NCBI RefSeq assembly: GCF_041956535.1 | Contig: NW_027192194.1 | Span: 752,009-816,008, forward strand | Source: Calcarisporiella thermophila CBS 279.70 | Taxonomy: Eukaryota; Fungi; Calcarisporiellomycota | Direction: 5' to 3' | Length of the DNA: 64,000 bases | Shown here: one piece after another, positions 19,774 to 52,201 of the stretch | Layout: the number at the start of each line of letters is the position of its first letter | Position numbering within the stretch: the first letter of the stretch is position 1 | Notes under the pieces: generated by a model | Seen by the model: only the letters and a program-made list of their open reading frames with translations | Databases searched by the model: none | Told to the model about the DNA's origin: nothing | Program-made: the position numbers and the translations under genes

Positions 19774-21230
19774 AGAACCAAAATGCTTGGGATATTTGCA
19801 AGATCTGGAAACAAGAGAAAGAAGATTAAAGTTCTAGGAAAAAAAAATTGATGAGCAAGATGAAAAAGAGAATATCAAGAAAATAAATAAATTAAAGAAT
19901 GAGTTAGGGTGATATAGGGAGAAAAAACTATTGAAATCTATGGGCGGATCAAAGTAGAAAAAATATCTACTAAATTTTAAATAACAATTGATTGTGGATG
20001 ATCTATAAAGTTGAGGATAATAAATACATACCAGAAGACCCGCAACTAATTAAAGATGATCGAGGTGTGTGCAACGTGACTTTTCCTGGGCCATCCAAAA
20101 AGAGGGAACTAATGCATAAGCGACCTTTAAATTTTGTAGTGACGAGCCCCTATAACGCTGCCACATAAAGATTCTTATAAATTTTCCAGTTCTGATACCT
20201 ATTGTCATTGTTTATATTTGCATTATAATTTTGTATGCGGGTTATGAATATTTACTTTGTTACATATAGAATATCGAAACAAACACTCTCAATTAATCTA
20301 AGCTAATTCAGTGCTGGTAAAGCCCAAATCATCTGCCCTTCAACATTATGAATGATTAAGTCGACACAGAACATATTTAATAGCAAAAAAAACGAATCAA
20401 GAAAAATTCTACTTATCAATTAAATTCAATGTCATGCCATATCAATAGAGGATTACAACTATAGGTTCTATATTTCTTTTGAATTACTCGCACTTTCAAT
20501 CATTGCATACATCTATAGTGACACACTGTTTATATCTTGTTACAAATTAATAATATTCTGTATACGTTTGGATTGCAAATTTCAACTCTTCCATCCACAT
20601 AGTAATCTCGTGTAATTATGTAAGTTTGGGTTGCGATAATATTATCCTATTATACTTCCCCTGAAAGAATAATATATTCCAATAATACTGGGAAGAGTGT
20701 GATATTGGCTCTTCTTTTTTTTAATGACTCGATATTCTCATGAATGTTGGATTCCAGATTAGAAAAAATGAAGGATTCGGAGGGGATTAAGTAGAACTTT
20801 GCTTTGATAAGATGAGCAAATAAAAGCTTGTAGCAAATGAGTTAGTAAAATCGTGCACAATCAATTCATCTTTACCATTTTGAACTGTTCTTTCACGTTT
20901 ATCAGTTCTGGATTAAGCTACAGGTGCTTATAATTTTGGTCAAGAAACTCGCATTACTTAAATTTTAAGAAATCCCCTTTTTTCTGCAAAGAAGGTTTAG
21001 CGTAATTAATTTTGTGCCTGTCGATCCTAATGCCTCTCACCTGAGTTTAATGGGATTGCACAACGATTGGTCACTGCACACTCTTGTTTTTGGACATGCA
21101 AGCGAATTAATTGCGACAAAAAAAAACGAGATCGTTAGCCGTGATATGCACGGGTTTAAATACTTTGACTCTCATAATACCCTTCACACTTGCTCCCATC
21201 CTTCCTTTATCATAACACGGCCCATTCACT

Positions 21231-22188
21231 ATGCATCGCATCTCCCATCTTCTAGCACTTATCGTAATCTGTTCATTATTCAATGTATTTGCATTGGCCG
21301 CACCTGCAAAGCACATGGTCGGCGGCGACATTCTCCGTCGCGATGGTGGAACAGCATCTGCGAAGATTATCACACAGTGTTCTGTTCCTGGTACCTTCGC
21401 TATAACATTTGACGACGGACCCCATCCCACATATACCAATCAATTGTTGGAATTTTTGAAACAAAAAAATCTTAAGGCAACGTAAGTGGGCATTTTTTGA
21501 TGGCGATTTCGAGATATCTTAATATAGAAAACATCAGATTTTTTGTGAATGGTCAAAATTATGGAAATATCCGGGACAATTCCGCTATAGTACAAAGAGC
21601 ATTTCAAGATGGACATCTCATTGCCTCACATACTTGGTCTCATAAAGATCTTACCACTCTAGATGAGAATGGGATTAAAACCGAAATGATTCAGTTAGAA
21701 GAGGCACTGAAGGACATTATCCAAGTCCGCCCTATGTAAGCTACTATATTTTTCTATCACTTCATATTTTTCCTATTGACTTCTCCACTTCAAAGATACA
21801 TGCGCCCCCCTTATGGAAATGTAGATGATAGAGTGCTAGGAATCCTCGATAGAATGGGGTACAAAGTGATCAAATGGGATATCGACACTAATGACTTCAA
21901 CGAGAACTTAGAGTCGTCGAAGCAAGCTTATCAAACTAAGTTGCAAAGCCTCAATGCACAAGATAGCGGTCATATGTATATACCAATAATTCTACTTTAG
22001 GATAAACGCTAAGTGTTCATAACCTCTTTTTTCTCTCTAGATCCCTTCAGCACGATACTCATGAAATCACTGTGAGAGATCTCGCGCCCTGGGCATATGA
22101 ATATATTGATAAAATGCATTATAAAGCCGTTACGGTTGCTGAGTGCCTCGGGAACTCAAATCCCTCCACCTGGTACAATCGGGTATAA
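21231..22188 (+). CDS. Secreted CE4 polysaccharide (chitin) deacetylase 1; exons 21231-21481, 21538-21735, 21796-21975, 22041-22188
   Basis: Signal peptide; all five NodB motifs present: TFDDGP, HTWSH, RPPYG, DTNDF, LQHD. Confidence 0.95.
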
Positions 22189-22896: not shown

Positions 22897-25387
22897 TTAT
22901 ATAATGCCGGCTTCGCGTTTATCAGGTTGTAACTCAATCTGTTCATCATCCTCTACTGCTTGGTCAATTCTCAGTGGTTTTCTGCCATACGTACACACTA
23001 CATCAATAGTGATACCACTCATGCCCAGCTCTTGGTATACGTTTCGTAGCAGCTCATCATATTCTTCCGGACTTAAAAACATCACTTGAGCTAGATGTGG
23101 TTTCATTGCACTCAGAAACTGCATCCATTGTTCCAGTCCAGAACTCCCGTCTCTATATGAGTGTTTACCGACCGGAAAACTCTGAATCAGTGAGTGAACA
23201 TCCTGAGCACCGATTATTTCCAGATAGCCACCAACTCTATTAGTCCAAGATGGGTGAATGTCGCGTGCACGCAGTGTATTATAAACTGTTATAGAGCATG
23301 GCCAATGTCATTTACCTCATCCAATTCATGCATACAATATAATTCACTTACTTCCATCCGCAAGCTTCCTGAGAGCACCTTCTTCACATTGGATAGAGTA
23401 ATCTACAGTTGATTGCGAGTAGCGTTAGCAAACTAATACTTAATGCTGTTCAGTATTCTCTAGTATTCTACCTACCAGCATCAACCAGTTCCACATAACC
23501 TCCAGGCTTGAGGATCCTTACCACCTCTCCAATTACTTCAGGCCACTCTCCTTGAAATATTCCGAAACTCATGTGGCGAATGTATACGAAGTCAAATTCA
23601 TTGTCTTCGAATGGCAGCCTCTTGAGAATATTAACGATCTGAAATATGCAGTTAACTGGCTTGATGTGGTTGGGGAACATGTTGTAGATGTCGATACCAT
23701 AGAACTGACTATTCGGATATTCTGTAGCCATTTCCATGGTCCATGTGCCTGGTCCACATCTAGGGAAAATACAAGAAACGTCAGCGCCTATCCAAAACAC
23801 TTTTAAGAGCAACATATACCCTGCATCTAGCACCTTGGCTCCATCCTGCAGAAAGGCGTGAACAGGTGATAGAAAATTGCGGTTGCCGAATAATGTACTG
23901 ATAGCGAGGATAAAGTATGAATAACCTTCCAATCTACTCTACAAAAGGGATGTGTACCGGAAGAAATAGTGCTGGCTTATTAATCGATCGAGCTCCTCTT
24001 CGTCGTTAGGCAAGATATAGTGGATCCCTGCATTTATGATCCAGTTTTTAAGTAATATCAGTAATATTATCTGAAAAACTTACCTGGGCTGGCGCAGAAT
24101 CTCCTTCCCAGCATCCATTTGTTTCCACCATCGTCGATCGACGAATCCGGCAAATCTTCGGTTGAAAAAACGAACTGCTGCTGACCAGGTTTGGTTGTTG
24201 TATTGTGATTTGTGTTCAATTGAGCCAATTGCTCTGGCAATATTGTTTCTTCTCTTTCAGGCGTACGCAAGACATCCATGAACCTAACTCTCCGAGCAAG
24301 AGATGAAGATGTCACTTCATTATTCGGTGTTGATGTACAACCGGGTTTATTCTGCATCCATGAGTCCAGATGCGCGAGTGTGTCTCCTCCGTCCAACTTG
24401 GTGGATGCATAGGATATACTTTGAGATTTCGACTGAGGTCCCTTTGATTTGTTAAAGGAGAATTCTCTGATGGCGCTTGAGAAAGTTGGGTTAAAAAAGA
24501 AGATAACCAGGTTGAAAACCCCTTGCAATCCAGTCAAGATTGCCTTAGCTTTTCCAGTGGAATCACCAAAAGAAGTATTGCGGGATTTTGTTACATACAA
24601 AAGAAGAAGTATGCACTCGGCCGGCAGGCATATGATAAGTACCAGTGGGTATCCAAGGAGTCGAATCATAGAAGTCATGACAAGACGTTCTCTAAGACGA
24701 TATTGCTCTCCACGAAGGTCAACCTCTCTTCTTTCACGGGATATCGTAGTGAAGACTTTAATTGCACATGCAAAGATGACAGTGAAGGAATACAAGATGC
24801 AGGCAAAAACGACAACGCTGACCAACACGGTATTAGCCAGCTCTATTTCATAAGGCCAATTTAAGATTAATATTTTCTATTACATGTACACAATGCTTAG
24901 AACCCTATATATACTTTAAGATATCAAATAACCTTACCAGTTTCGAATTATATAGCAAGTTCCCGTAGAAAAGTAAAGGTGATGAAAAGGCAAAAGATAC
25001 TAAAGTGGATAGAGGAAGATACCACCTCTGAAAACTAGCAACATTTAAGTGCTTATGGAAGGCTGAAAGATGAAGATCAAATGCAATGCTCACAGTGAGT
25101 AGTGAGAACCACATAGGGAAAAAGTAATAAGACCAAAGAATAATTCGGCCAAACCAAAGATTGTTAGGTATAACCGCATCACAGAAATCTCTTTCCGCCC
25201 ATACGACGTATAGACTTCGATAGAGAGCATCAGCTAGACCAATCCAGAAGCTAAGTCTAAAAGATATGCTGCAAGTTGCCAGAGGCTGGGTATAACGAAG
25301 GAAAGCCACCAGAATCATTATGAGTGTAGCGCACACAATTGAGGCGAGGTTGATCGCGAGCTCCCCCTCTGATATTGCAAACTTCAT
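22897..25387 (-). CDS. 7TM GPCR-like receptor (cAMP-receptor/Git3-like) fused to a C-terminal LaeA-like class I SAM methyltransferase, 704 aa; exons 25387-24938, 24876-24084, 24027-23958, 23897-23820, 23759-23476, 23402-23352, 23285-22897
   Basis: Seven hydrophobic helices including RLLGYPLVLIIC (TM6) and GLQGVFNLVIFFFNP (TM7); the same exon continues without a stop into WMLGRRF; spliced YILPNDEEELDRLISQH, VLDAGCGPGTW, FYGIDI, LPFEDNEFDFVYIR, ILKPGGYVELVD; six GT-AG introns; exons total 2115 nt with no internal stop. Confidence 0.88.
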
Positions 25388-25963: not shown

Positions 25964-27179
25964 TTAACAAGTTGAAAATTCACTCAATCCACTGGAAAAG
26001 GGTATAAGAATACGATCCGCTTTTTTCTTTGCCTCCTTCAATTGCCGTTCTGATAAAACCTGGTTATCTTGCTCTTTAGGAACTTGCTGTACATTGAGTT
26101 GATCATTCGCTTGCCCATTTATCTGATCATTTCTCGGTGCCATTGCTAGCTCATCGTCGGCAACTTGTTGTAGATGTGGATATTTCTTCGCATAATTAGA
26201 ATAGGCAGCAGTGCGGTTCCAATATTTCATATATTTGACATCTTTGAACAACTTGAACTGGCTGAGAGCGCCTGAGAAAGCAGGATTGAATAAAAAGATA
26301 ATCAGGTTGAAGACCCCTTGTAATCCAGTCAAGATCGCTTTGGCCTTTCCGGTGGAATCTCCAAAAGCTGTGTCGCGAGATTTCGTAACATATAAAAGAA
26401 GGATTATGCACTCAGCAGGCAAGCATATGATAAGTACTAACGGATATCCAAGCAATCGAGTTACAGACATCATAACAAGGCGTTCTCTGAGGCGATTCTT
26501 CTCTCCATGAAGATCCTTTTCTCTCCTTACACGAAACACCATAGAGAAAACTTTAATGGCACATGCAAAGATGATAGTGAAGGAGTATAAGATACAAGCA
26601 AAAACAACAACGCTGACCAACACCGTTAAAGCGAGTTCCAGTCCAAATGGCCAATCTAAGATAATTATTTTCTACCACAAGAGTACTTAGATTGGAAAGC
26701 TAAATATACTGAAATAATAGTGGACTTACTATCTTCGAATTGTATACCAGATTACCATAAAAAAGAAAAGGTGAAGATAATGCGAGAGGCACTAATGTGG
26801 ATACAGGAAGATACCACCACTGAAATCTTGCAATGTTTAAGTGTTTATGGAAGGCCGACAGCTGAAGATCGAGAGCAATGCTCACTGTTAGCAATGAGAA
26901 CCACATTGGGAAAAAATAAAAGGACCAAAGAACAATTCGCCCAAACCAAAGATTGCTCGCTATAACCGTATCACGGAAATCTACCTCCATCCACATAACA
27001 TAAAAACTTCGATAGAGAGCATCAGCAAGCCCAATCCAGAAACTAAGTCTAAACGAAACACTACGAGTGGCTTGAGGTTGTGTATATCGAAGGAAAGCGA
27101 CAAGGAACATTATGAGTGTAGCACACACAATTGATGCGAAATTGATCGCGAGTTCCCCATCTGATATCGCAAATTTCAT
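25964..27179 (-). CDS. 7TM GPCR-like paralog without methyltransferase (385 aa); exons 27179-26730 and 26671-25964
   Basis: TM1-7 closely similar to the fusion copy with the same intron; unrelated tail after NP ends ...EFSTC*; no methyltransferase sequence before the next gene. Confidence 0.88.
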
Positions 27180-28587
27180 CTTTAATTACCTGCGCTAAAC
27201 ATTACTTAGAACAAAGACAATCTTTCATCTAAATGCAACAAAGTAGTTTCAACTTACCTGTTTTTACCACAAAAGAAATGTGGATTATCAAACAGCCTTG
27301 CTTCTTTTATCGCAACATTTTAGCGTTTTTTCTCGAGGACAAAACTTTATAGTATGTGCAAATTTAAAATTTAGGACATATTTCAACTTTTACCAAATAC
27401 ATTAGGTTAAAGTCAATTGCTCATATTATATTGTGTAAATTTACATTGGGAATTATTCTTTGTATAAATAATTCGCTTTTTAGGCAAAGTCCTAGTAACA
27501 AATCCTCCAGGCATTACATATATCCGAAGTTTAACCTTAGAGTTCCAGATAGTACCGATTTTCCAATTCCAGTTATATCTGGAGATTGAACAATATATTT
27601 TAACAAATGCTGTTTGTAACACATTATCGGGATTAAATCCAATACTAAAAGATATTTTGAGATCCTCAAATACTCTTGACTCCTTACAAAATTATGCATG
27701 GATAAAACAAGTAGGACCATATGGAAAGGATGGAGAAGGTTTGAGTTTCACTATAATGGTCTAAATTGGTATTCAATATTAAAAAAGAAATTGGCGTAGT
27801 AAGCGCACACGAAGATAATTTATTTATTTTTGATTAAGTGAATCCTTGCTTCATTATATCCCTACAAAAAAAGCGGGTATATAAAGTGTTTAGAAAATAT
27901 CAGGCACTTTGAATCACAAAATAAACCTCTGGGTGCTTCTATATTTTATCATCCCATCTCTCAGTTGTTTATTTGCCAATAATGGATATTTTCCAAGTAG
28001 GTGATTAACCGCAAGTTTTATTAAACGGATATTAAAAAAAAAATTGCCTATACATTATTACTTATTAGGATTTTATCTTATGGCATTGAAGCATGATACC
28101 ATCATCTGATATCTCCGATTCGGCAGAGTCTTCTTCATGGATACCGCTCTCTACAGTATATCATGCAGTATTTGAGTCTTGACTCTCTGTTTCATCAGAA
28201 TGTTATGCTCAATTGTGTTGTATCTCTTGATTTTACTGATCGATATGCATATAAACCATTAATTAAAGTATAAAACGATAATGGTTACGAGTAGCATGAA
28301 TAAGAATGAAATGGGAGTTCCTGAAATTTAAAATCGCCTTGCCACTTTTACGTGTGCCATTTGGCAAGAAATGAGCCCCAAACTGAGAAATAAAAAGGGG
28401 AATGAAAGTCGAAAGAGCTGCCATAATGAAGATAAAATCGTGATATAATAGGTTGATATAAATTGGACATACAATCTATGATTATAAGAAGCTGAAGAAT
28501 GCAAACAAAAGCATTCGAGAATTATTACTCTAGTTATCGAAATTTAAAAAGATTTAAAGTACCTTCGGAAAGTTTTGGGGCACCTCT

Positions 28588-29494
28588 CCCTACAAAAACC
28601 CGCCTGGTGAAAACTGCTAGAAAAANNNNNNNNNNNNNNNNNNNNNNNNNNNNNNNNNNNNNNNNNNNNNNNNNNNNNNNNNNNNNNNNNNNNNNNNNNN
28701 NNNNNNNNNNNNNNNNNNNNNNNNNNNNNNNNNNNNNNNNNNNNNNNNNNNNNNNNNNNNNNNNNNNNNNNNNNNNNNNNNNNNNNNNNNNNNNNNNNNN
28801 NNNNNNNNNNNNNNNNNNNNNNNNNNNNNNNNNNNNNNNNNNNNNNNNNNNNNNNNNNNNNNNNNNNNNNNNNNNNNNNNNNNNNNNNNNNNNNNNNNNN
28901 NNNNNNNNNNNNNNNNNNNNNNNNNNNNNNNNNNNNNNNNNNNNNNNNNNNNNNNNNNNNNNNNNNNNNNNNNNNNNNNNNNNNNNNNNNNNNNNNNNNN
29001 NNNNNNNNNNNNNNNNNNNNNNNNNNNNNNNNNNNNNNNNNNNNNNNNNNNNNNNNNNNNNNNNNNNNNNNNNNNNNNNNNNNNNNNNNNNNNNNNNNNN
29101 NNNNNNNNNNNNNNNNNNNNNNNNNNNNNNNNNNNNNNNNNNNNNNNNNNNNNNNNNNNNNNNNNNNNNNNNNNNNNNNNNNNNNNNNNNNNNNNNNNNN
29201 NNNNNNNNNNNNNNNNNNNNNNNNNNNNNNNNNNNNNNNNNNNNNNNNNNNNNNNNNNNNNNNNNNNNNNNNNNNNNNNNNNNAGGGGGTTCGCGATTCC
29301 CTATAATTTTTCAACAAATTCAAACAATGGGAGAGGAGTCAACAAAAATTTGTAGACTCCTCTCCCATTATTAATATCGAGAAAAATAGGTGAAAAGTTT
29401 GTAAAAATTTAGGGAATCGCGAACCCCCTTCATCTTTTCTACATTCTCCTATACTTTTTCTAGCAGTTTGCGCCAGGCGGGTTTTTTTGTAGGG
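28588..29494. mobile_element. CACTA/CMC (EnSpm-like) element nested inside the Tc1 element; interior mostly an assembly gap
   Basis: TIRs ccctacaaaaacccgcctggtgaaaactgctagaaaaa (28588-28625) and tttttctagcagtttgcgccaggcgggtttttttgtaggg (29455-29494); 3-bp TSD TCT at 28585-87 and 29495-97; subterminal hairpins. Confidence 0.8.
28626..29283. other. Assembly gap (658 N)
   Basis: Run of N. Confidence 1.
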
Positions 29495-29778
29495 TCTTTA
29501 TTTTTAATAAATTGATTATATTTCCTGAAAAATTTCTATTTCAAACATACTCTATTTATGTTTTAAAAACTATCTGTGCCTGCTTTCACGATGTTTACAA
29601 TATGGACTATTTTGTTTGCAATTTTACAGGGATATACCGATTTATTATGAAAAATGAAGTGGGACAATAGGGGTAGAATTGTACCCTTGTAGCTCGATAT
29701 CTAAAGGTGTCTACGGCTCGAAAGTTGCTCCGTATTTTCTGATAATCATACTCTTATTTATTTTATAAAACAAGCCCT

Positions 29779-30803
29779 ATACCTCGAATCACTCCAAGTA
29801 AACGTGCTCGCGTATCCGTCTTCCTCGAAGAGGGATACTCAACACGCAAAATTGCAGCCGGAGAAGGCATTGGAAAAAGTAGCGTGGCGAGAATACTCCA
29901 GAATAAAGAGAATGCATCAAACAATCCTCCAAGAAAGAAAATGGGTCGCCCTCGAAAATTATATAGCAGTGGTGAAAATAGATTATGTAGAAGCGTGGCG
30001 ACGGGAGAGTGTAAGAACGTAGTTAAGGCGCAAGAACTTTGGAACGAGACAACTGAGGAGGTTATTTCCGTGAACACTGTTCGTGAAGCACTCCATCGTA
30101 ATGATTATGTAGCTAGGGTCAAGAGAAAAAAACTTTTCTATCGAAAAGGCATCGCCTTAGGAGACTGGCATTTGCAATGAAATACAGCAGTTGGACCGTT
30201 GAAGGTTGGAGTCGTGTCATATTTTCTGACGAGTGCCAAATACGCGTCGTTGGCAATGAAAGGAGAGAGTGGTTTTGGAAGAAGCGTAATGAACCACTAC
30301 AAGAGCATCATATACAGCCAACGATCAAACACGGTGGTGGAAGTATAATGATATGAGGTTGTATGACTTCATATAGCATTGGAAGGGCATGTCGCATAAT
30401 AGAAAATCTTAATGCTGAGTTATATTCGAGAATCCTCGACGAAGAGTTGTTACCTACGCTCTAGTCATATAATCTCAGTAAGCAATTGACAATGTTTCAA
30501 CACGATAACGACACCAAGCATTAAGCCAAACGCATTGATCGATGGTTCGAAAATAACCAAGTCCAAGTTCTCGATTGGCCTTCACAATCACCAGATCTCA
30601 ACCCTATCGAAAATTTATGGGATGAGCTAAAGGGATGTCTTAGGAGCAGATTTCCAAAGATAACGAGTCAGGATGATCTGTGGGAAAAGGTGAATATTAT
30701 CTGGGAGTCATTCACTCAGGAGGATTGTATGATGTTGATCCGCACGATGCCAGAACAGATCCAAGCTGTTATTAAGGCAAAAGGGGGATATACTAAGTGG
30801 TAG
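29779..30803 (+). pseudogene. Tc1 transposase pseudogene
   Basis: (ATA)PRITPSKR..GYSTRKIA..GRPRKL HTH; WSRVIFSDE, KHGGGSIMI*GC, QHDNDTKH*, WPSQSPDLNPIENLW (D-34-E spacing), AVIKAKGGYTKW*; lost ATG, frameshift near 30140, at least three stops. Confidence 0.93.
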
Positions 30804-32290: not shown

Positions 32291-34589
32291 CTACTTGTCT
32301 TCCGGCTTGTGCTGATCTTCAGGTTGCATCTCGATCCGTTCATCGTCCTTCACTAGTTTTAATGGCTTCTTGCCATACGTGCACATTACTTCAATGGAGA
32401 TTTCATTCATGCTCAACTCTTGAGATGCTCTTTGTAGCAGCTCATCATATTCGTCCCCGCTGATATACATCACTTGAGCTAGATGTGGCCGCATTGCAAT
32501 CAAAAACCGCATCCATTGCTCCAGTCCTGACCTCCCATCCCTATCTGAGTGTTTACCAACTGGAAACCTCTGAGTCAGCGACTGAACATCCTCGACACCC
32601 ATTGTCTGTAGAATGTCGCCAACCCTACGGCCCCACGATGGATGAATGTCGCGTGCACGCAGAGTGTTGTAAACTGTATTAGAACACGATCAGTGATCTT
32701 TATCTCTTCCAACTAATGTATGTGATAGATTGTATATACTTACTCCCATCTATCAGCTTCATGGTTGCCCTTTCGTCACACTGGATAGAATAATCTATGG
32801 TTGTTTATGAGTTATGTCAGGAAATTGGTGACCTAATTCAATCAAGTATGTTATGATAAACGATATACCGGCATCAACTATCTCAACATAACCTCCAGGC
32901 TTCAGGGCTCTTAGCAAGTCCCCAATTACATCACCCCACTATCCTTGGAACACTCCGAAGCTCATATGGCGGATGTATACAAAGTCAAACTTATTGTCTT
33001 CGAATGATAGCTTCTTGAGAATGTTCGCGATCTGGAAAGTGCAGTTGGATGGCTTGCTGTGGAGCGGGAACATGTTGCTGATGTCGATACCATAGAACTG
33101 ACTATTCGGATATTCTGAGGCCATCTCCATGGCCCATGTACCTGGTCCACATCTAGGGGATATACAGAATACATCAGGACCTATCGAATAACAGTTTTGA
33201 AGAGTAGCATATACCCTGCATCCAGCACCTTGGCTCCACTTTGCAAAATGATGTGAACGGGTGATAGAAAATCCCGGTTGCCAAATAAGGAGCTAGCAGC
33301 AAGAAATATGTGTTAATAGCCTATCAACCCACTCTACAGAGGAAGCTGTGTACCGGATGAAGTAGTGCTGGCTTATCAGTCGGTCGACCTCCTCTTCGTC
33401 GTTAGGCAGGATATAGTGGACCCCTGCGATTTTTGATTTAATCTTCAAGCATCTTCAGCAAAATTATCTGAACAATTTACCCGGACTTGTGCAAAATCGT
33501 CTTCCCAGCATCCATCTGTTCTCTTTATCGTTGATCGTTGAGTCCGGTAAATCTACTGATGAGAAAACTAATTGTGGCAGATTGGGCTCTGTCAATGTAT
33601 CGTGATTTTTATGAGTCTGTCCCCCTCTCTGTCCCACCGTCGCTGTTACCTCTTCTCTTTCGGGTGCGTCATCCATGAATCGGACTCTTCGAGGGGGAGA
33701 TGAAAATGGTTTTTCATACTTCGGAGCCGATATACCAATAGGCTTTTCCCTTAACCACGATTCCAAATGCATAAGCGTGCCTCCTCCACTCAGCTTGGTG
33801 AATGCATAGGAAACACTTCGAGACTTCGACAGGTTGCTATCACAGAATTCTCATTCAACAATTCTGTTGAATGAGAATTCTCTGATAGCACTTGAGAAAG
33901 TCGGGTTGAACAAGAAGATAATCAGGTTGAAAACTCCTTCTTCACGAAAAATTGTAGTGAAGACTCTAATCGCACATGCAATTATGACCGTGAAGGAATA
34001 CAAGATGCATGCAAAGACGACGGCACTGACAATCACAGTAATTGCCATCTCCACTTCATAGGACCAATACAATAATAATATATTCTGTGAGATATATACT
34101 ACGATTAGATATCTGATTACATATACAATACAATAGCTTTACCAGTTTGGAGCTATACTCCAAAGTTCCGCAAAAAAGAAAGGGTGAAGATATAGAGAAA
34201 GACACTAAAGTAGACGCAGGAAGATACCACTTCTGGAAACTCGCAATATTCAAGTGTTTATGGAAGGCTGAGAGTTGAAGATCCAATGCGATACAAACGG
34301 TAAGTAATGAGAACCACATGGGGAAAAAATAAAAGGACCAAAGTATAATCCGGCCAAGCCAATAATTGTTAGGTATAAAAACAGAACAGAAATCTCTCTC
34401 CATGTATATAACATAAAGGCTCCGATTGAGGGCATCAGCAAGACCAATCCAGAAGCTGAGCCTAAAAGAAGCGCTGCGTGTAGCCTGAGGTTGGGTATAA
34501 CGAAGGAAAGCGACAAGGATCATTATGAGAGCAGCGCATGCAATTGATGCGAAATTGATTATTAGTTCTTCTGAAATTGCGAATTTCAT
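32291..34589 (-). pseudogene. Second GPCR-methyltransferase fusion copy, disabled
   Basis: Same 7-exon architecture as 22897-25387; in-frame loss of 69 codons (ICL3/TM6/start of TM7) near 33940; TGA at 33851-53 from an inverted duplication; TAG at 32939-41 where copy 1 has GAG (FQG*W vs FQGEW). Confidence 0.88.
33835..33890. repeat. Near-perfect 26-bp-arm palindrome (inverted duplication)
   Basis: tgctatcacagaattctcattcaaca-attc-tgttgaatgagaattctctgatagca, 25/26 paired. Confidence 0.95.
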
Positions 34590-36825
34590 TTTCAACTCCC
34601 TGGAAATAACACATCTCAAAATAAAAATCCCCTCTAATCTAAATGCCTACAGATTAAGCTTACTTTTTTTGTGTGCATAGAGAAATGTTAAGGCCATTAA
34701 GATATTTTACCTCCGTTTTATCATTACATGCTAGTAATTATTTTTTCTCGAGGACAAAACTTAGTAAATTATATTAACTCTATTTAGTGTTAGATTTTAA
34801 CCATATGCATTTCGTGTTGGTAGTAAATCAATTAATCCTTGCTAAATTAATAAGGCTATTTCTACCTTCTTATTTCTAACAACTTGTTAAATGCTCGCAA
34901 CGACCTATATTTTCTTTTATAAAACACCAACTCGAAATTTTTTGTATATATCTCCAAGGATAACTACGAAATGAAATTAGAAGTTCTTAATGTAGACCCT
35001 TGAACATCCTGGTCACGAACACTTAACGCCAACGCATGTTGTTTTGCGCATGACTTATTACAATCACACATTGCCTTGAAAAGAGATATGGCTAGTATGT
35101 ATCCTATCAGACCAAAAAGGCAGTCAGTTATTAAGTAGCTTGAAATAGCTGGGTTTAATCTACACTTAGTTCAACTACATCTAATAGCATGGTGCCAGCT
35201 AAAAGGGAATGATGTTATTTAAGTATAAAGCTCTTAATCAATGGCGACAGATCAAATTTAAATATCAAAACAATCTTAATGAATAAGATCATGTTATAGC
35301 TTCACCATGAAAAATTCATGTCCTCAGTAAGTAAAGTCTAGATAATAATAATCATCGATTTATAGGTACAAGTAGGGCTCCGGAATGACCCGAGTTAGAG
35401 CGAATATTTTCTTAATCTCTAATAGTCACCTTTAATGATATTATAAGTTCCTTTATATCTTGCATAAAATTCTGATAAAAGAAAACATTGGGCAACATGG
35501 ATGAGCAAAATATGCTACTGGTATTGCATTTTCTTGAGATTACAATAGGATATACATATAATTATATTAGGATAAATATCATTATAGATAAAAGTATAGT
35601 AGTATTGATAAAAAAAAAGGTACATATAAGAGAAAGGAAGCCAAAATTCAATATTGAATCGGTTAAACGAGTTAAAAGTCCACTCAATTAGCTGAAAAAA
35701 AAAATATAAGAATATCAACGAATTTTTTATTTTGCCTCAAGCTTTATAACTACTTATGATTTAAACTATCCCTATGTAATAAGTCGAAAGGCAATATATA
35801 TTAATTGATCTCGAATTGCCCTTAGAGCGCAAATAAAACTTTTCTAAGAAAGTTAGGTGTGACCAGTGACTTTGGCATTGAGAAAATAGCTTTAAATACA
35901 CGATGCAAAAGATCACGAGCTTCTATTAATGCGAGATTACATGGTAGCTTTCACAAATAGAGGCCTCAGAATGCTTTAGAGAGGGTGATGAAATGATCAT
36001 TAGAGCAATACGTATAAAAAAGACATTAAACCGTGTGTTCAACACAAATAGTAATGGTAAATATAATCGTATCTTTCTACTATACATCTTTTGCTAAGGT
36101 AGCTATAGTTCAGGAATATTTTCTCAACTGCATAACATACTTTATTGATAAATGATACGGATTATATTAATCTGCTCACGATTATTCCAGCGTCATGCAT
36201 TTGGAAAGCTTTCAACTGTGATTCAGTACAAAGTATGAAGTCTTAATTTCACAAATCCTAATTTCCTTACTCTTAACATTGGCTAAAATCCATTTCGTTA
36301 AAAATATCCTCTCTTGCAAGTCGCAGAGTTGGCCTGCAAACTCTGTAAGATCGGGTGCCAAGCTAATAACCTGTCTTCAAAACAAAAACGTTCTTTAGAT
36401 GTCATGTGTCGCGCCGCGGAATAGAGGCTTTTCTATATCGAATTTGATAAAGCCAAAAATAAACGACCACGCAGTTAAAAATAGACCAATGAATTGCGAT
36501 TTGTGCAACGTTACCAAGATCGAACACTCTCTGAAACGTATCGATGGCTGTCGCATATTAATGAGCTTAAAACACGTTTTGAAGGCGGCTACTCGTTTGA
36601 TGGCATCGGATGGAGAAGAAAAGCTAATAATTAAAAAGCCACTCGGATAGATTCAACTCAATAAATATCATTGTTTCCGTTGGCGCTATTTTATTTGTTT
36701 TTTATCGTCTTCCTTGGTCCTCCCTCCCTCCCCTGCCTACTCCTTATTCATTCTTCCCCTGTCAATTCCCGAAACTCATAGCTCCTTCCCCTCTCCGCTC
36801 CTTTGGTTTATTCTTCTCCCCTACA

Positions 36826-37852
36826 ATGCGCTGCACTCTCTTTTTCTTCATTCTCGCTACGACCTTCTCTCTGCTTTGTGGCCTTGGCTCGGCTGCAAGG
36901 GCTCGCGTTTACACTAAATGCGCCCGACCTGGTACATTTGCCATCACATTTGACGACGGACCTTATATCTACACCGAACAATTGGTGGACTGGCTTAACA
37001 AAAACAAATTTGTCGCAACGTAATTATTTAGCGCTATTTGAGGCATTTGTGTTTCAAAATTCCCTCCCCTTGCCCTCTAACTTCCTCTCTGTGCATATCC
37101 ATAGATTTTTCGTGAATGGTGATAACTGGGGAAGCATTTACGACTATGCCGCTGTTCTTAGGAAGGCCTATAATGCTGGCCACTTAATCGCGTCACATAC
37201 ATGGTCGCATGCAGATCTCACTAAGCTTAGCACGACTCAAATCAGGACCGAAATGACGCGGTTGGAAGCTGCCCTAAAGAAAATATTAGGCGTGCGTCCC
37301 ACGTGAGTTCTAAGATGTATCAATTTTATCGAGCAAACTTCTGACATTTCCTGGTTTGCTTTAGTTTCATGCGCCCCCCTTATGGCAGCTGTAAGTTTTT
37401 GTTGTTTTCTTCTATCTTAATTCATCTTGGGAATGGGAAGCTTACTGATGCAAAACATCTTTTTCGCACTCCAGCGAATAACAAGGTGCTTGATACTCTA
37501 GGAAATCTTGGCTACAAGGTTATCTTGTGGGATATCGATACTCTCGATTACAATGGGGATGTTGAGGCTTCAAAGAATATCTACGAAACCAGCTTGCAAA
37601 ATTCAAACTCACGTACGGACGCACACATGTAAGAACGTCAATTATCATCAGATACAAATTCTCATTGGGCTCTACATTTTTTATACTAACTATGGCACAT
37701 TAACCATTAGTGCTCTGCAGCACGATGTGCATCAAGCCACCGTGGACCAACTCGCAAAATTTGCGTACGACTATGTACACAAGAAGGGTTACCGTACGGT
37801 GACTGTGGCTGAGTGTCTTGGATTTGGCAAGGGGGCTGGTTACCGCAAATGA
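36826..37852 (+). CDS. Secreted CE4 polysaccharide (chitin) deacetylase 2; 5 exons including a 26-nt micro-exon (about 37365-37390)
   Basis: Signal peptide; TFDDGP, HTWSH, RPPYG, DTLDY, LQHD. Confidence 0.95.
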
Positions 37853-42024: not shown

Positions 42025-43201
42025 ATGCGCGTCATTTCTTATCTCTCCCTCTTACTGCTGGCCGCCTCGGTCTCTTCAGCTGCAAAGTAGGTCACTCACT
42101 GGATTAGCTCTGCCCACGTTTCGCTGATTGACATGCTATGCATTTGATTCTAGGAGTAGCAATGCCACTATGAATGCAGCCATTCAGGGCTCCGTAAACC
42201 TTGGGAATGCCACCACTACCCAAAAGCCAGCAGGGGGCGAAACCTCGGTAAAAACAGGAAGTAAAAATTCCACAGAAACGACTGCAGTTAATGCCACCGG
42301 CACAGAATCAGCCGTGGCCCAAGTGATCACCAAGTGCACTGTCCCAGGCACGTTTGCTATCACCTTTGATGACGGGCCGTTTCAGTTCACAGAGGGTTTG
42401 GTCGACTATCTCAACCAGAACAAACTCAAGGCAACGTAAGTTAAACGCTTCATCTGGGGTTTTGCCATTTTGGTGGTGGTGATTGTGAAGTACCAAGGCT
42501 CACCTTCTCTGCTCTCTCGCTTGTCCAGGTTCTTTGTCAACGGAAAGAATTATGATCGTATCGAAACCTATGCCAAGGTAGTCAAGAAGATGTTCGACTC
42601 AGGACATCAAATTGGCTCGCACACCTGGTCGCATAAGGACCTCGCCACTTTGAAAGAATCAAGCATTCGGTGCCAGATGAAGAAGCTCGACTGCCACCTT
42701 AAGAAGATCATTGGTGTGCGGCCGATATACATGAGACCACCTTTCGGATCGGTGAATAAGCTCTGCTTGAGGGTGCTCGGTGAGATGGGATACAAGGTGG
42801 TGACGTGGGATGTGGACTCGAAGGATTATGAGGTCAACAACCTCGAGAAGGAACAAGCGAATTATCAGAAGGACTTGAATGGTGCAGACCCCAAGACCAC
42901 CGGCCATATGTAAGTTTTATTGGTTGGTTCCGGCGGGCCGGCGTCATATTGCAGCACGTACTGACCATACAATGTTTCCTTCACCTTATAGCTCCCTACA
43001 ACACGATGTCTACAACATCACAGCAGGACAACTTGCTCCCTGGGCATTTGACTTCGTACAAAAGCAGGGCTATAAGGTATGATAGAAATGTAAGAATCGC
43101 TTATAGAATAGGCTCGCTCACATTGTGTCTCTCTGCTATAGGCGGTCACCGTTGCTGAATGCCTGAACGATAGCGATCCAAAAAATTGGTATCGCGCCTA
43201 A
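42025..43201 (+). CDS. Secreted CE4 polysaccharide (chitin) deacetylase 3 with Ser/Thr/Asn-rich N-terminal spacer; 5 exons
   Basis: MRVISYLSLLLLAASVSSA signal; TFDDGP, HTWSH, RPPFG, DSKDY, LQHD. Confidence 0.95.
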
Positions 43202-45594: not shown

Positions 45595-47384
45595 CTAAAA
45601 GTCTATAAATAATTCCTGGTAGCTCTTCTCGCCCACAGCCAAACTGCCTCCATAAGTGCCCTCCGCCTCTTCCGGGTAAGCGTCGAAGCAGCTGGCATCC
45701 GAATCGGCACTCACGCGTGGGATATAGGGCGGAGTCACCTCTTTCCTCACAAGCTTACCCCAGTCCACCGACTCAAACCACTTGTGTCTCTTCACATCCT
45801 CACACCCGCCTTTCAAGTTCCCGAGCCGCTTACTTAGGTCCTTGGCGAGAAGCCGCTTTATCAAATCTTTTGCGGCGCCGTCAAAGTGGCTGGGGAAGCG
45901 GGGTCTTTTCGCGGCCACAATTTTCTCGTACAACCGCATCGGATCTGGATCGTGGTAGGGGGGGTGCCCTGCCAGCATTTCAAAGATGAGGACACCGAGC
46001 GCGTAAAAGTCGGCAGCCTTGCCGTAGCCTTTGGTCGTGATAATCTCGGGCGCGAGATATTCTATTTAGGCGGGGGAAGCGGAGAGGAGCGGAGGATGTT
46101 AGCTAGGGAGGGAAATCGGAATAAACTTTAGCAAAACCTAAAGCGGTTACCTGGAGTCCCACAGAGTGTGTAGGTGACATTATCGGGGGAATGTTTGGCA
46201 AAACCAAAGTCGGTAATACGTAAATGGCCATTTCGGTCCAATAGAAGGTTCTCGGGTTTCCTAATGCCACGGGGACGCAAAGAAACAAGAACCAAAGTTA
46301 GAACGGGGGTCGTGCAGAGGGAAGCGTTGTGAGAAGGGGTGATTACAAGTCTCGGTAGAGGACATCCATCGAATGCAGATATTCTATTGCAAGCAGGACC
46401 TCGGAGGCATAGAACCTGGCAATGTCGTTGGGGAATCGCTACGGGCACAGCAAAAGCAAGGCTTGAGTCAGCCGGTGCCCACATCTCATAAACCTTAAAG
46501 TGTAAAGATTCACCAACCTGCGATCTCCGCAGCACGCTGAATAGCTCCCCACCCGGCACGAAGTCCATCACCATGAACAGATGGGTAGCATCCTGAAAGG
46601 TGCCCCACAAATTGACGATAAAAGGATGGTTGATTCGTTCAAGGATTCGCTTCTCGTCGTTGGTGTGCTGAACCTGCTTGAAACGCACAATATCCCTTTT
46701 CCGCAGGGTTTTAATGGCGTAGAATTTTTTACTATGGTTCGATTGGGACCTAGAGGGGAGAGGAGAAAAAAATATGAATAAGCACGGTTAGGAGGTAATA
46801 TCTCCACGGCTTACAAATGAACCCTGCCGAATGACCCCGTCCCAAGGGTGCGTATTAGCGTGAAATCCTGCAGCGCCATTTTGCCCAACAATTGAGGTTT
46901 AGGTGGGATTTGTGCGAAGAAATCCTGCGATTTGGATCGTGTTTCTAAGGAGCCAGGCGAAGCGCCTGTAGCTTGAGGAGATGAAATGAGGATCAAAAAG
47001 AGGGGACAAGAAGCTCGTGATATCGAAAAACTTACTGCTCTTCTCATTATTAATCTTTGCCGCGTCCATCGAAGTATCATTCGAGCACTTGTCGCTGGTG
47101 TAGCCACTATCTCGTGGGGCCTGAATCTGCTGCTGCATTTCGCATTGTTTCTGTTGTTCTTGCGCGTAGCTCTTCTCCCATTTTTGTGCCGATGCGGGGG
47201 AATAGAGCGGGTGATCACTGAGGGGTGGCTGGGGCAGTTGGCTGGCTTGGGACTCGACGGGAGGAGTGGGGGTATTAAGGCGAGAGACGTCATGACTGGA
47301 TGGCCCGTTGGATCTGCTAAGCGATTTTTGGCGATGTGAGCCGCCATTCTTAATGACTGAGGTCAGCTTTTGAAGAAACGCCAT
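45595..47384 (-). CDS. pkaC: cAMP-dependent protein kinase catalytic subunit; 6 exons
   Basis: [62 protein letters not shown]-terminal FIDF. Confidence 0.96.
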
Positions 47385-48222
47385 TATTGATGAGAGGGGG
47401 GAGGAGGGCGAGGGGAGGAGAGCCAGACTTTCTCGAGGGTGTTGAGGAGAATGCTCAGATGAATGGAAAAAAAAAAAGAAAATGGAGCGATGTCGGTATT
47501 ACATGTATCTGGAGAGAAAACGGTTAAGTGTTGACAAAAGCTAAAAAAAAAAAGCTAATGGGGATTGGGAAGTGTAGAAGAGCAGAATTAAGAATGGGCG
47601 GGTTAGACAAATGACATTGGTGGCAAAATGATACCACGCCCCTCAGGATTCATTTGATAGGTGACCGCCATTCCACCGGTTTAAGGCCCACCTGCTTAAT
47701 TGCTTGTGGGCTCCTCGATCATGCACACATGGAGACAAAACAAGCACGTTATCACAAAGCAGGACTCGAATTCGCTATTGCTGCAGCCACACAGGGGAGC
47801 TGCGCAACAGAAGGGGCCTCGAGCCCTCCCCTGCTGAGTGGGCGGATCCGATGACGATAACGAGCTCGCTGGCGTCATGCCCCGTTCCGCGCCAGCTTGC
47901 GAGCATTTGCGTTTGCCACCCGAACAGCAGGGGCTCTAGCTGTTAGCCCGAGATCCGGAACACGGGGCTAATGAGTATTTTCAGTTTGGGCAGTGGAAAA
48001 GAAACGACTTTTAGACAAATAGGGATAAATAGTGTATATAGAATGGCGTGGGCATTACAAGCGATAAGTAGGCCGGGATAAGATTAACAATGGTATTTTA
48101 CAATAAACAAAGGGGAAACACACACTTCTCGCTCCTTCTGTTTCAATAAATATCACTTTGTAGAGGTCCGGGGAAAACGTATCTGCTCTTGGCTCTAGGG
48201 AGGGGAGGGGGGAGGAGCCAGG

Positions 48223-50780: not shown

Positions 50781-52201
50781 ATGTCATTCCCACCCCACCT
50801 CACCCTTCTAGAACCGCACAAACGCCTACTTGAGGAGCTAGGAGATGAGCTCGCTCGCATCCAGCCAAGTGACGCTTTGCAGTTTTGTTTCAACTACTTC
50901 AGTCGTCGGTTGGAGGAGGAGAGATCGCGTTTCATGAGTGGTAAGTGCCGTGGCTCTCCGCCTTTTTTTTTCGCTTTGTTTATCCATCCGCAACCTAATG
51001 GCTGACGGGATTTTTGCCATGACTTAGGGGGTGCACAGGCTCCCAATCAGGCATTCGAATCCTCCATCCCCCCCTTCGCCCCGGGAGATGAGGCCCAGCT
51101 CCAGCAGGACTTCGACGAGCATCTCATCGACAGCGATGAGGATGACGTCGACGAAGAGGAGAGCGAGGATGTTTCCCCACTCCCCGCAGTCGATCCCTCG
51201 CGTTACAATCCGGCGCGCCGTACAAGTGTCAGCGCCGAATCCATGACCCCTAGCCGTAATCAGCAGGATTACGTGAAGCTGGTCGTGCCCAAATCCGAGG
51301 AACAGCGCCGCCGGATCGAAGCTTCGATTGGGAACAATTTCTTGTTCAAGAATCTGGACGAGGAGCAGCACCGAGACGTGGTCAACGCCATGACAGAAAA
51401 GCGCTTCAAGGCGGGCGACGAGGTCATCCGCCAGGGAGCCGTCGGAGACTTTTTCTACATTGTGGAGACGGGGACCCTCGAGGTCTACATCGACAAGGGC
51501 GCGCCCCAGAAGGTGGCGGAGTATGGGCCGGGCGGCAGCTTTGGGGAGCTCGCACTGATGTACAACGCACCCCGTGCTGCAACCGTGGTCGCCACCTCGG
51601 ACTGTGTCCTCTGGGCCCTGGATCGGGTCACGTTCCGCCGTATCCTCATGGAAAACACGTCCCAGAAGCGCCGCATGTATGAGGCCTTCCTCGAGGAAGT
51701 GCCCCTGCTCGCCTCGTTGCAGCCCTACGAAAGACACAAGATTGCAGACGCATTGGAGAGCGTTTATTTCGACGATGGCCAGCTGGTAATCAAGCAGGGC
51801 GACGTAGGCGACAACTTCTATTTTGTGGAGGCGGGTGAAGGCGTCGTGATCAAGGCCGACGACAAGGGAGTGGAGCACGAGGTGTTGCAGCTGAAGAAGG
51901 GAGACTACTTTGGCGGTAAGCTCAGCCGTTCCTCACCTCTCCCTGCTCGCCCAGTGGGTGGACAACCTTACTAACCCCCTCTCCTTGCCTTTCCGCCCTA
52001 GAATTGGCCTTGCTCAACGACCAGCCCCGTGCGGCAAGCGTCCGCGCTAAAGGCCGGCTAAAGTGCGCAACCCTGGGAAAGAAGGCGTTCACCCGCCTTC
52101 TCGGGCCTCTGCACGAAATCCTCAAGCGCAACAGTGCTCAGTACGTGAGCGTCATTTCCTCGCAGGGCCAAAACTATGGTCAGGATGTGACCATGTCCTA
52201 G
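50781..52201 (+). CDS. pkaR: cAMP-dependent protein kinase regulatory subunit (type II-like); exons 50781-50940, 51028-51915, 52002-52201
   Basis: D/D domain [13 protein letters not shown]; inhibitor site RRTSVSAES; two cNMP cassettes [15 protein letters not shown] and [15 protein letters not shown]. Confidence 0.97.

Follow-up and report, generated by a model that had tools for sequence, protein, structure and literature searches.

The window, a stretch of 64,000 nucleotides from the genome of Calcarisporiella thermophila, contains three paralogues: an intact gene in which a receptor is fused to a methyltransferase, a receptor-only gene and a fused pseudogene. The intact fused gene (22897-25387, minus strand) consists of seven exons separated by six GT-AG introns of 56-73 nt, which splice into one frame of 704 amino acids with a single terminal stop. 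Exon 1 (24938..25387) encodes the start methionine and TM1-TM4 of the GPCR-fold domain (residues 1-150). Exon 2 (24084..24876, residues 151-414) carries TM5-TM7, helix 8, the entire linker and GRRF, where the methyltransferase starts; 123 stop-free residues lead from TM7 to WMLGRRF, placing the fusion junction inside this exon. Intron 2 (24028..24083, 56 nt, phase 1) follows directly after GRRFC. Exon 3 (23958..24027) contains the YILPNDEE...DRL..QH motif of LaeA-like methyltransferases, exon 4 (23820..23897) the first half of SAM-binding motif I, and exon 5 (23476..23759) the methyltransferase core, consisting of the rest of motif I, the acidic residue after beta2, and motifs II and III. Exon 6 (23352..23402) is followed by exon 7 (22897..23285), which encodes the C-terminal part of the methyltransferase and the stop. 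An acceptor for exon 2 at 24843 was rejected because it breaks the frame; the acceptor at 24877 restores a single frame.

A search with exon 2 retrieved VTP21DRAFT_8596 (P0001) of C. thermophila (Mucoromycota), a public protein annotated as uncharacterised that is identical to the 704-residue spliced model. The first-pass annotation had described a seven-exon, 704-residue frame over GT-AG introns, an uninterrupted run from TM5-TM7 through the linker into WMLGRRF, and an intact motif I. The spliced sequence and its identity to the public protein bear out the frame, the linker is continuous, and motif I is complete when read across the exon 4/5 junction. As independent support the public model carries little weight, since the genome was annotated with SnowyOwl, using transcriptomes only when available, and the genome paper leaves GPCRs unmentioned (PMC11393059). 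Retention of intron 2 would stop translation upstream of the enzyme core. The position of this intron is common to all 12 fusions described below and to the standalone relatives C9a and C5. We consider it very likely that receptor and enzyme are produced as a single chain.

The receptor-only paralogue, VTP21DRAFT_8597 (25964..27179, minus strand), lies in tandem with the fused gene and encodes 385 amino acids, with one intron (26729-26672), a different tail and no enzyme. The second fused copy (32291..34589, minus strand) had been taken as a repeat of the same architecture that argues against an assembly chimera. It does keep the domain order and all six introns, and to this extent the argument stands, but the copy is broken: a 207-nt in-frame deletion removes ICL3/TM6, a TGA (33853-33851) follows TM7 and a TAG (32941-32939) interrupts the methyltransferase. 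It is thus a pseudogene. Its public annotation (32291-33710) consists of the methyltransferase half alone (VTP21DRAFT_8598, 326 amino acids) and skips the TAG stretch; several sister fused loci are publicly annotated as partial genes. The interval between the receptor-only gene and the pseudogene (28499-30180) includes an assembly gap (N at 28626-29283) and, judged by inspection of ORFs only, a Tc1/mariner-like transposase fragment (29884-30180).

Fused loci across the genome

Searches of the genome give 63 matches to exon 1 and 39 to the methyltransferase core exon. Models built with a spliced aligner join receptor and enzyme at 12 loci on six contigs, seven of them fully open, one open apart from an assembly gap and four broken, the last indicating a high turnover of fused loci. 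Beyond these 12 there are one fused locus with an assembly gap and one truncated remnant. The five methyltransferase introns share position and phase in all 12 fused loci, and in P0009 a single exon of 414 codons extends from the start methionine through all seven helices to GRRF. We confirm that about a dozen genes of C. thermophila join a GPCR-type receptor and a methyltransferase in one frame. The receptor family as a whole numbers some 45-50 genes in the 28-Mb genome.

The linker of the window gene (24127..24462, minus strand; residues 289-400) is predicted to be disordered, and its length is kept at 118-130 residues in all open copies. Its dN/dS of 0.27-0.54, at dS mostly 1-2, points to purifying selection; for the 7TM and enzyme parts the ratio is near 0.1. 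Shuffles of the linker DNA lack stops with p = 0.0006 for the window gene and, locus by locus, with p from 0.0001 to 0.009. Trees of the 7TM domain and of the methyltransferase have seven of nine splits in common, the other two being weakly supported, compared with a maximum of four for random labels. The agreement of the two sequence trees shows that the domains co-diverged, and a single fused ancestor of the ten-member clade is well supported. For the two distant fusions the trees leave room for a separate origin, as the standalone enzyme P0032 branches together with them at an open fork.

Two other explanations were ruled out. An assembly chimera is contradicted by 12 fused loci on six contigs with common introns, the intact copies on other contigs being better evidence than the pseudogene, and two adjacent genes are contradicted by the position of the junction within one exon and by selection on the linker. 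The earlier claim of a real fusion is upheld by open frames in eight loci, the linker dN/dS and the matching domain trees, from which we judge the predicted GPCR-methyltransferase family to be real, selected and lineage-specific. A short conserved C-terminal helix (residues 717-732 in P0008; near the C-terminus in P0009), preceded by a variable stretch, is common to the two distant fusions and absent from the clade of the window gene.

Receptor-only genes on three contigs (window 25964-27179; L042:5900-7400; L050:4900-6500) have a common, homologous old non-enzyme tail, and their heads group with those of their fused neighbours. In one pair of a fused and a receptor-only gene, identity at third codon positions is 76-92% over TM1-TM6 and 58% at TM7. 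These patterns suggest that gene conversion moves receptor heads between methyltransferase and ordinary tails. Plain repeated loss of the enzyme would leave the common old tail of the receptor-only genes unexplained.

The receptor and methyltransferase domains

Whole-protein searches and folding were carried out on database paralogues (P0002, P0008, P0023) rather than on the window's own joined protein, which was searched exon by exon. The N-terminal region had been expected to model as a 7TM GPCR fold, and in the paralogues it does. The AlphaFold2 model of a receptor-only paralogue has seven helices and helix 8 at pLDDT 88, and all 50 Foldseek matches listed are GPCRs. The best structural match of the paralogue 7TM domain gives Z 22.5 with an rmsd of 3.9 over 278 residues. 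The paralogue models thus show the GPCR fold, with seven TM helices in a rhodopsin-like arrangement and helix 8. The domain was recognised by folding alone: Pfam and sequence searches against solved structures did not recognise it, and hydropathy alone gives four strong peaks. The hallmarks of class A (rhodopsin-like) receptors are lacking, with D-L-Q/H in place of DRY, N-L-x-x-F in TM7 and no NPxxY, and no cysteine in ECL2; 7tm_1 gives one weak match among 17 family members. Coupling to G proteins is therefore not assured. About 14 G-alpha loci are present in the genome.

A closeness to cAMP-receptor-like and Git3-like receptors had been proposed from short motifs, and language-model features give a lead in that direction: the nearest atlas clusters, compared without alignment, carry Dicty_CAR, Git3 and GPR_Gpa2_C at 0.94-0.95. 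The receptors resemble this group, which includes GPR157, in having 7TM and helix 8, RxxxYP in TM6 and GxxN in TM7. They differ in lacking the ECL2 cysteine and in falling below every Pfam cut-off. Of the Pfam matches looked for, the methyltransferase was found above its cut-off (Methyltransf_25, E 4e-13, exon 5), but Dicty_CAR, Git3 and GPR_Gpa2_C were not: the best value was E 0.0014 for GPR_Gpa2_C, which matched two of 17 members, and the window exons matched none. In the searches made, the only receptor relatives outside C. thermophila are receptor-only genes of Dimargaris and Dispira, which have unrelated neighbours. The C. thermophila receptors form a family of their own with these, apart from the Git3-like GPCRs.

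The second domain is a class I SAM methyltransferase, with Pfam matches above cut-off (Methyltransf_23/25) and the class I fold in a LaeA-like domain; motifs I-III and the acidic residue are kept in all intact fusions. The fold of a paralogue model matches 3mgg, an archaeal enzyme, at Z 23.5. Other structural neighbours are peptide and small-molecule methyltransferases at 15-20% identity, and this range of neighbours does not fix the substrate. The motif GR-x-F/Y ... YxLPxDExE.DRL..QH, which we take to be the defining N-terminal motif of LaeA-like (Llm) methyltransferases, is present in the fusions and in fungal relatives from metagenomes. Motifs, Pfam match and fold together support the earlier assignment of an intact LaeA-like methyltransferase. 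The enzyme shares GRRF, YILPNDE-DRL-QH and the motif I-III pattern with the LaeA/Llm family, but it is fused to a receptor, and its nearest kin are Mucoromycota methyltransferases, many of them starting MGxxxS, not nuclear LaeA.

The closest standalone enzyme, P0032, is 66% identical to the P0008 domain, has the same five introns and starts with MGNVKS followed by basic residues. Among eight standalone paralogues with a readable start, six begin MGxxxS and a seventh MGNTLAS, compared with 8 of 104 random MG starts; relatives in Rhizopus and Spinellus likewise begin MGxxxS. MGxxxS corresponds to the established N-myristoylation pattern, making these enzymes putatively myristoylated. The presence of this start in standalone relatives suggests that the enzyme was probably membrane-bound before fusion, and that the receptor probably replaced a lipid anchor. 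MGxxxS plus basic residues is the start of most standalone LaeA-like methyltransferases of this genome (L033-L039, upstream parts). Our literature search found no paper on MGxxxS or myristoylation-type starts of LaeA-like methyltransferases.

Relation to known receptor-enzyme fusions

At the gene level the family fits the definition of a GPCR-bigram, a single protein with an N-terminal GPCR and a C-terminal intracellular catalytic domain. The catalytic types described are PIPK, INPP, AC, PDE, TKL, TK and AP (aspartic protease), with no methyltransferase among them (PMC6033456). The word methyltransferase is also absent from two further surveys, and a phrase search of the literature for a GPCR-methyltransferase fusion found no paper. 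The fusion had been put forward as undescribed, and in the literature searched we found no prior description. From its predicted domains, the GPCR-methyltransferase is a further type of GPCR-bigram and the methyltransferase is new among the enzyme classes. The GPCR-bigrams of oomycetes and other protists (PMC6033456, PMC5784254) resemble it in domain order, in forming a small gene family beside standalone enzymes and in having an open mechanism. In contrast to GPCR-PIPK, -INPP, -AC, -PDE and -TKL, the enzyme is a SAM methyltransferase and not of the lipid, cyclic-nucleotide or protein kinase/phosphatase type, and it comes from a fungus, a group reported to lack GPCR-PIPKs, and has been found in one species only. 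No fusion was found outside C. thermophila among 1.84 billion representatives, homologue searches, the atlas and metagenome scans, searches of limited reach that overlook distant or unannotated genes; a metagenome contig with the label human gut (L095) was excluded from the later analysis. The fungal 7TM-RGS protein GprK (PMC7907439) and LYCHOS/GPR155 also combine a GPCR-fold domain with a cytoplasmic module, and LYCHOS matches the 7TM domain at Z 21, but neither the RGS nor the DEP domain transfers a chemical group.

The family adds an enzyme class and a fungus to receptor-enzyme fusions of open mechanism. It also bears on a long-standing puzzle of the LaeA-like methyltransferases, none of which has a proven substrate, LaeA itself included (PMC4299510). 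With the enzyme tied to a defined location, its substrate can be sought directly by proximity labelling and methyl-proteomics centred on a single receptor.

Linker architecture and proposed mechanism

In the full-length model of the paralogue P0008 both domains fold well and residues 294-396 have pLDDT below 50. The pTM of 0.48 derives from a 31-row alignment and is still compatible with a transient inter-domain contact. The model suggests two domains on a flexible leash and no fixed contact between them. About 100 disordered linker residues and the lack of a fixed domain contact favor tethering over allostery, and the earlier proposal that an extracellular ligand directly gates methylation was not borne out by this model.

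Two short elements of the linker are conserved within the ten-member clade. A Ser/Thr cluster (24400..24432, minus strand; S299, S301, S303, S305, S308 and T309, candidate phosphorylation sites) is kept at each site in 9-10 of the ten members, against 4 of 10 for the median linker column. An RVxF-like motif (24280..24294, minus strand; residues 345-349) occurs at the same place in all ten, with a shuffle rate of 6-24% each. The members are related copies, so these counts are not independent, and neither element occurs in the two distant fusions. In fungi, PP1 docks mainly through RVxF motifs (PMC6506691), making residues 345-349 a candidate PP1 docking site.

Based on these observations, we suggest, with a probability of roughly 0.45, that the receptor positions the methyltransferase at the membrane and that ligand binding controls its access to substrate without direct allostery. 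The receptor would serve as a flexible membrane leash for a LaeA-like enzyme carried on a cytoplasmic tail of ~120 residues. The ancestral enzyme may already have been anchored at the membrane through MGxxxS, the fusion exchanging the lipid anchor for a receptor. Binding of ligand might then alter the reach of the enzyme if the Ser/Thr cluster is phosphorylated, PP1 docks at the RVxF-like motif, a G protein or another partner is recruited, or the protein is endocytosed. The most likely substrate would be a protein of the signalling complex, although a lipid or small molecule is possible, and duplication with head swapping may widen the range of ligands acting on a single conserved enzymatic output.

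A further reading, which we regard as doubtful, is that of a ligand-controlled methyltransferase receptor, in which binding outside the cell would switch methylation without G proteins, and recombination between neighbours would plug heads into either a methyltransferase or an ordinary tail. If it were true, methylation would be a primary output of a GPCR.

It is unlikely, in our estimate, that the receptor is only an anchor, with the fusion protein made, the enzyme constitutively active at the membrane and the receptor signalling independently via G proteins or not at all. The long disordered linker with no predicted contact would agree with this, as would an ancestral enzyme that seems to need just a membrane anchor, the many receptor-only paralogues and the movement of heads between tails. 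However, the linker is held at 118-130 residues with conserved motifs, and about a dozen duplications have preserved the fusion while the heads diverged, which we infer would be best explained if different ligands matter to the enzyme.

Release of the enzyme has a precedent in Aspergillus nidulans, where a signal frees VipC-VapB from VapA, their tether at the plasma membrane (PMC4299510). There, too, LaeA-like methyltransferases are held at the plasma membrane in a signal relay, but the tether is a separate zinc-finger protein bound non-covalently; in C. thermophila the receptor itself would do the tethering within a single chain. This complex is the nearest functional parallel. In a covalent version of that system, a signal would cleave the linker, and velvet proteins or chromatin would become targets of the freed enzyme after its move to the cytoplasm or nucleus. 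The linker is modelled as exposed and disordered, velvet loci are many (roughly 18 velvet-domain loci in the 28-Mb genome), and a cleavage model, among others, has been put forward for GPCR-bigrams (PMC6033456). However, neither a protease site nor a nuclear signal was identified, and the lipid-anchor motif of the closest standalone relatives is permanent, which points to action at the membrane. Overall, we consider release quite improbable.

We give still less credence to a one-component allosteric switch, in which ligand moves TM5/TM6 and switches a docked enzyme, or adaptation comes from methylation of the receptor by its attached enzyme. A single chain, an enzyme on the cytoplasmic side, a conserved linker length and a receptor that lacks the DRY arginine would fit such a switch, but no packing between the domains is predicted across the about 100 disordered residues, and direct control has been called unprecedented for GPCR-bigrams (PMC6033456). 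Finally, it is very improbable that there is no fused protein, with intron 2 retained or the transcript ending early to give a long-tailed receptor, and the enzyme made from an internal start: many intron 2 donors deviate from GTAAGT and several sister loci are annotated as partial, but an internal start is made less likely by the linker, in which no methionine is conserved and two loci have none at all before GRRF; the enzyme begins, with GRRF, in the receptor exon, the same intron and similar donors are also seen in the standalone methyltransferases, and coding selection extends over the linker right up to GRRF.

A receptor-positioned methyltransferase would link surface sensing to methylation. 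Natural controls exist within the genome: besides the fused copies there are receptor-only genes whose heads are nearly identical, and a standalone enzyme of the myristoyl type that is 66% identical. C. thermophila is culturable and its proteins have already been used in structural work, which makes it suited to cryo-EM.

The receptor cluster of the window is flanked by three polysaccharide (chitin) deacetylase-like genes on the plus strand (about 21000-22050, 36800-37850 and 42200-43000), which carry TFDDGP, H(T/S)WSH and RPPxG motifs. Judged from ORF translations, the window also contains a PKA catalytic-subunit-like gene (46100-47400, minus strand) and, ~4 kb away, a PKA regulatory-subunit-like gene (51243-51974, plus strand).
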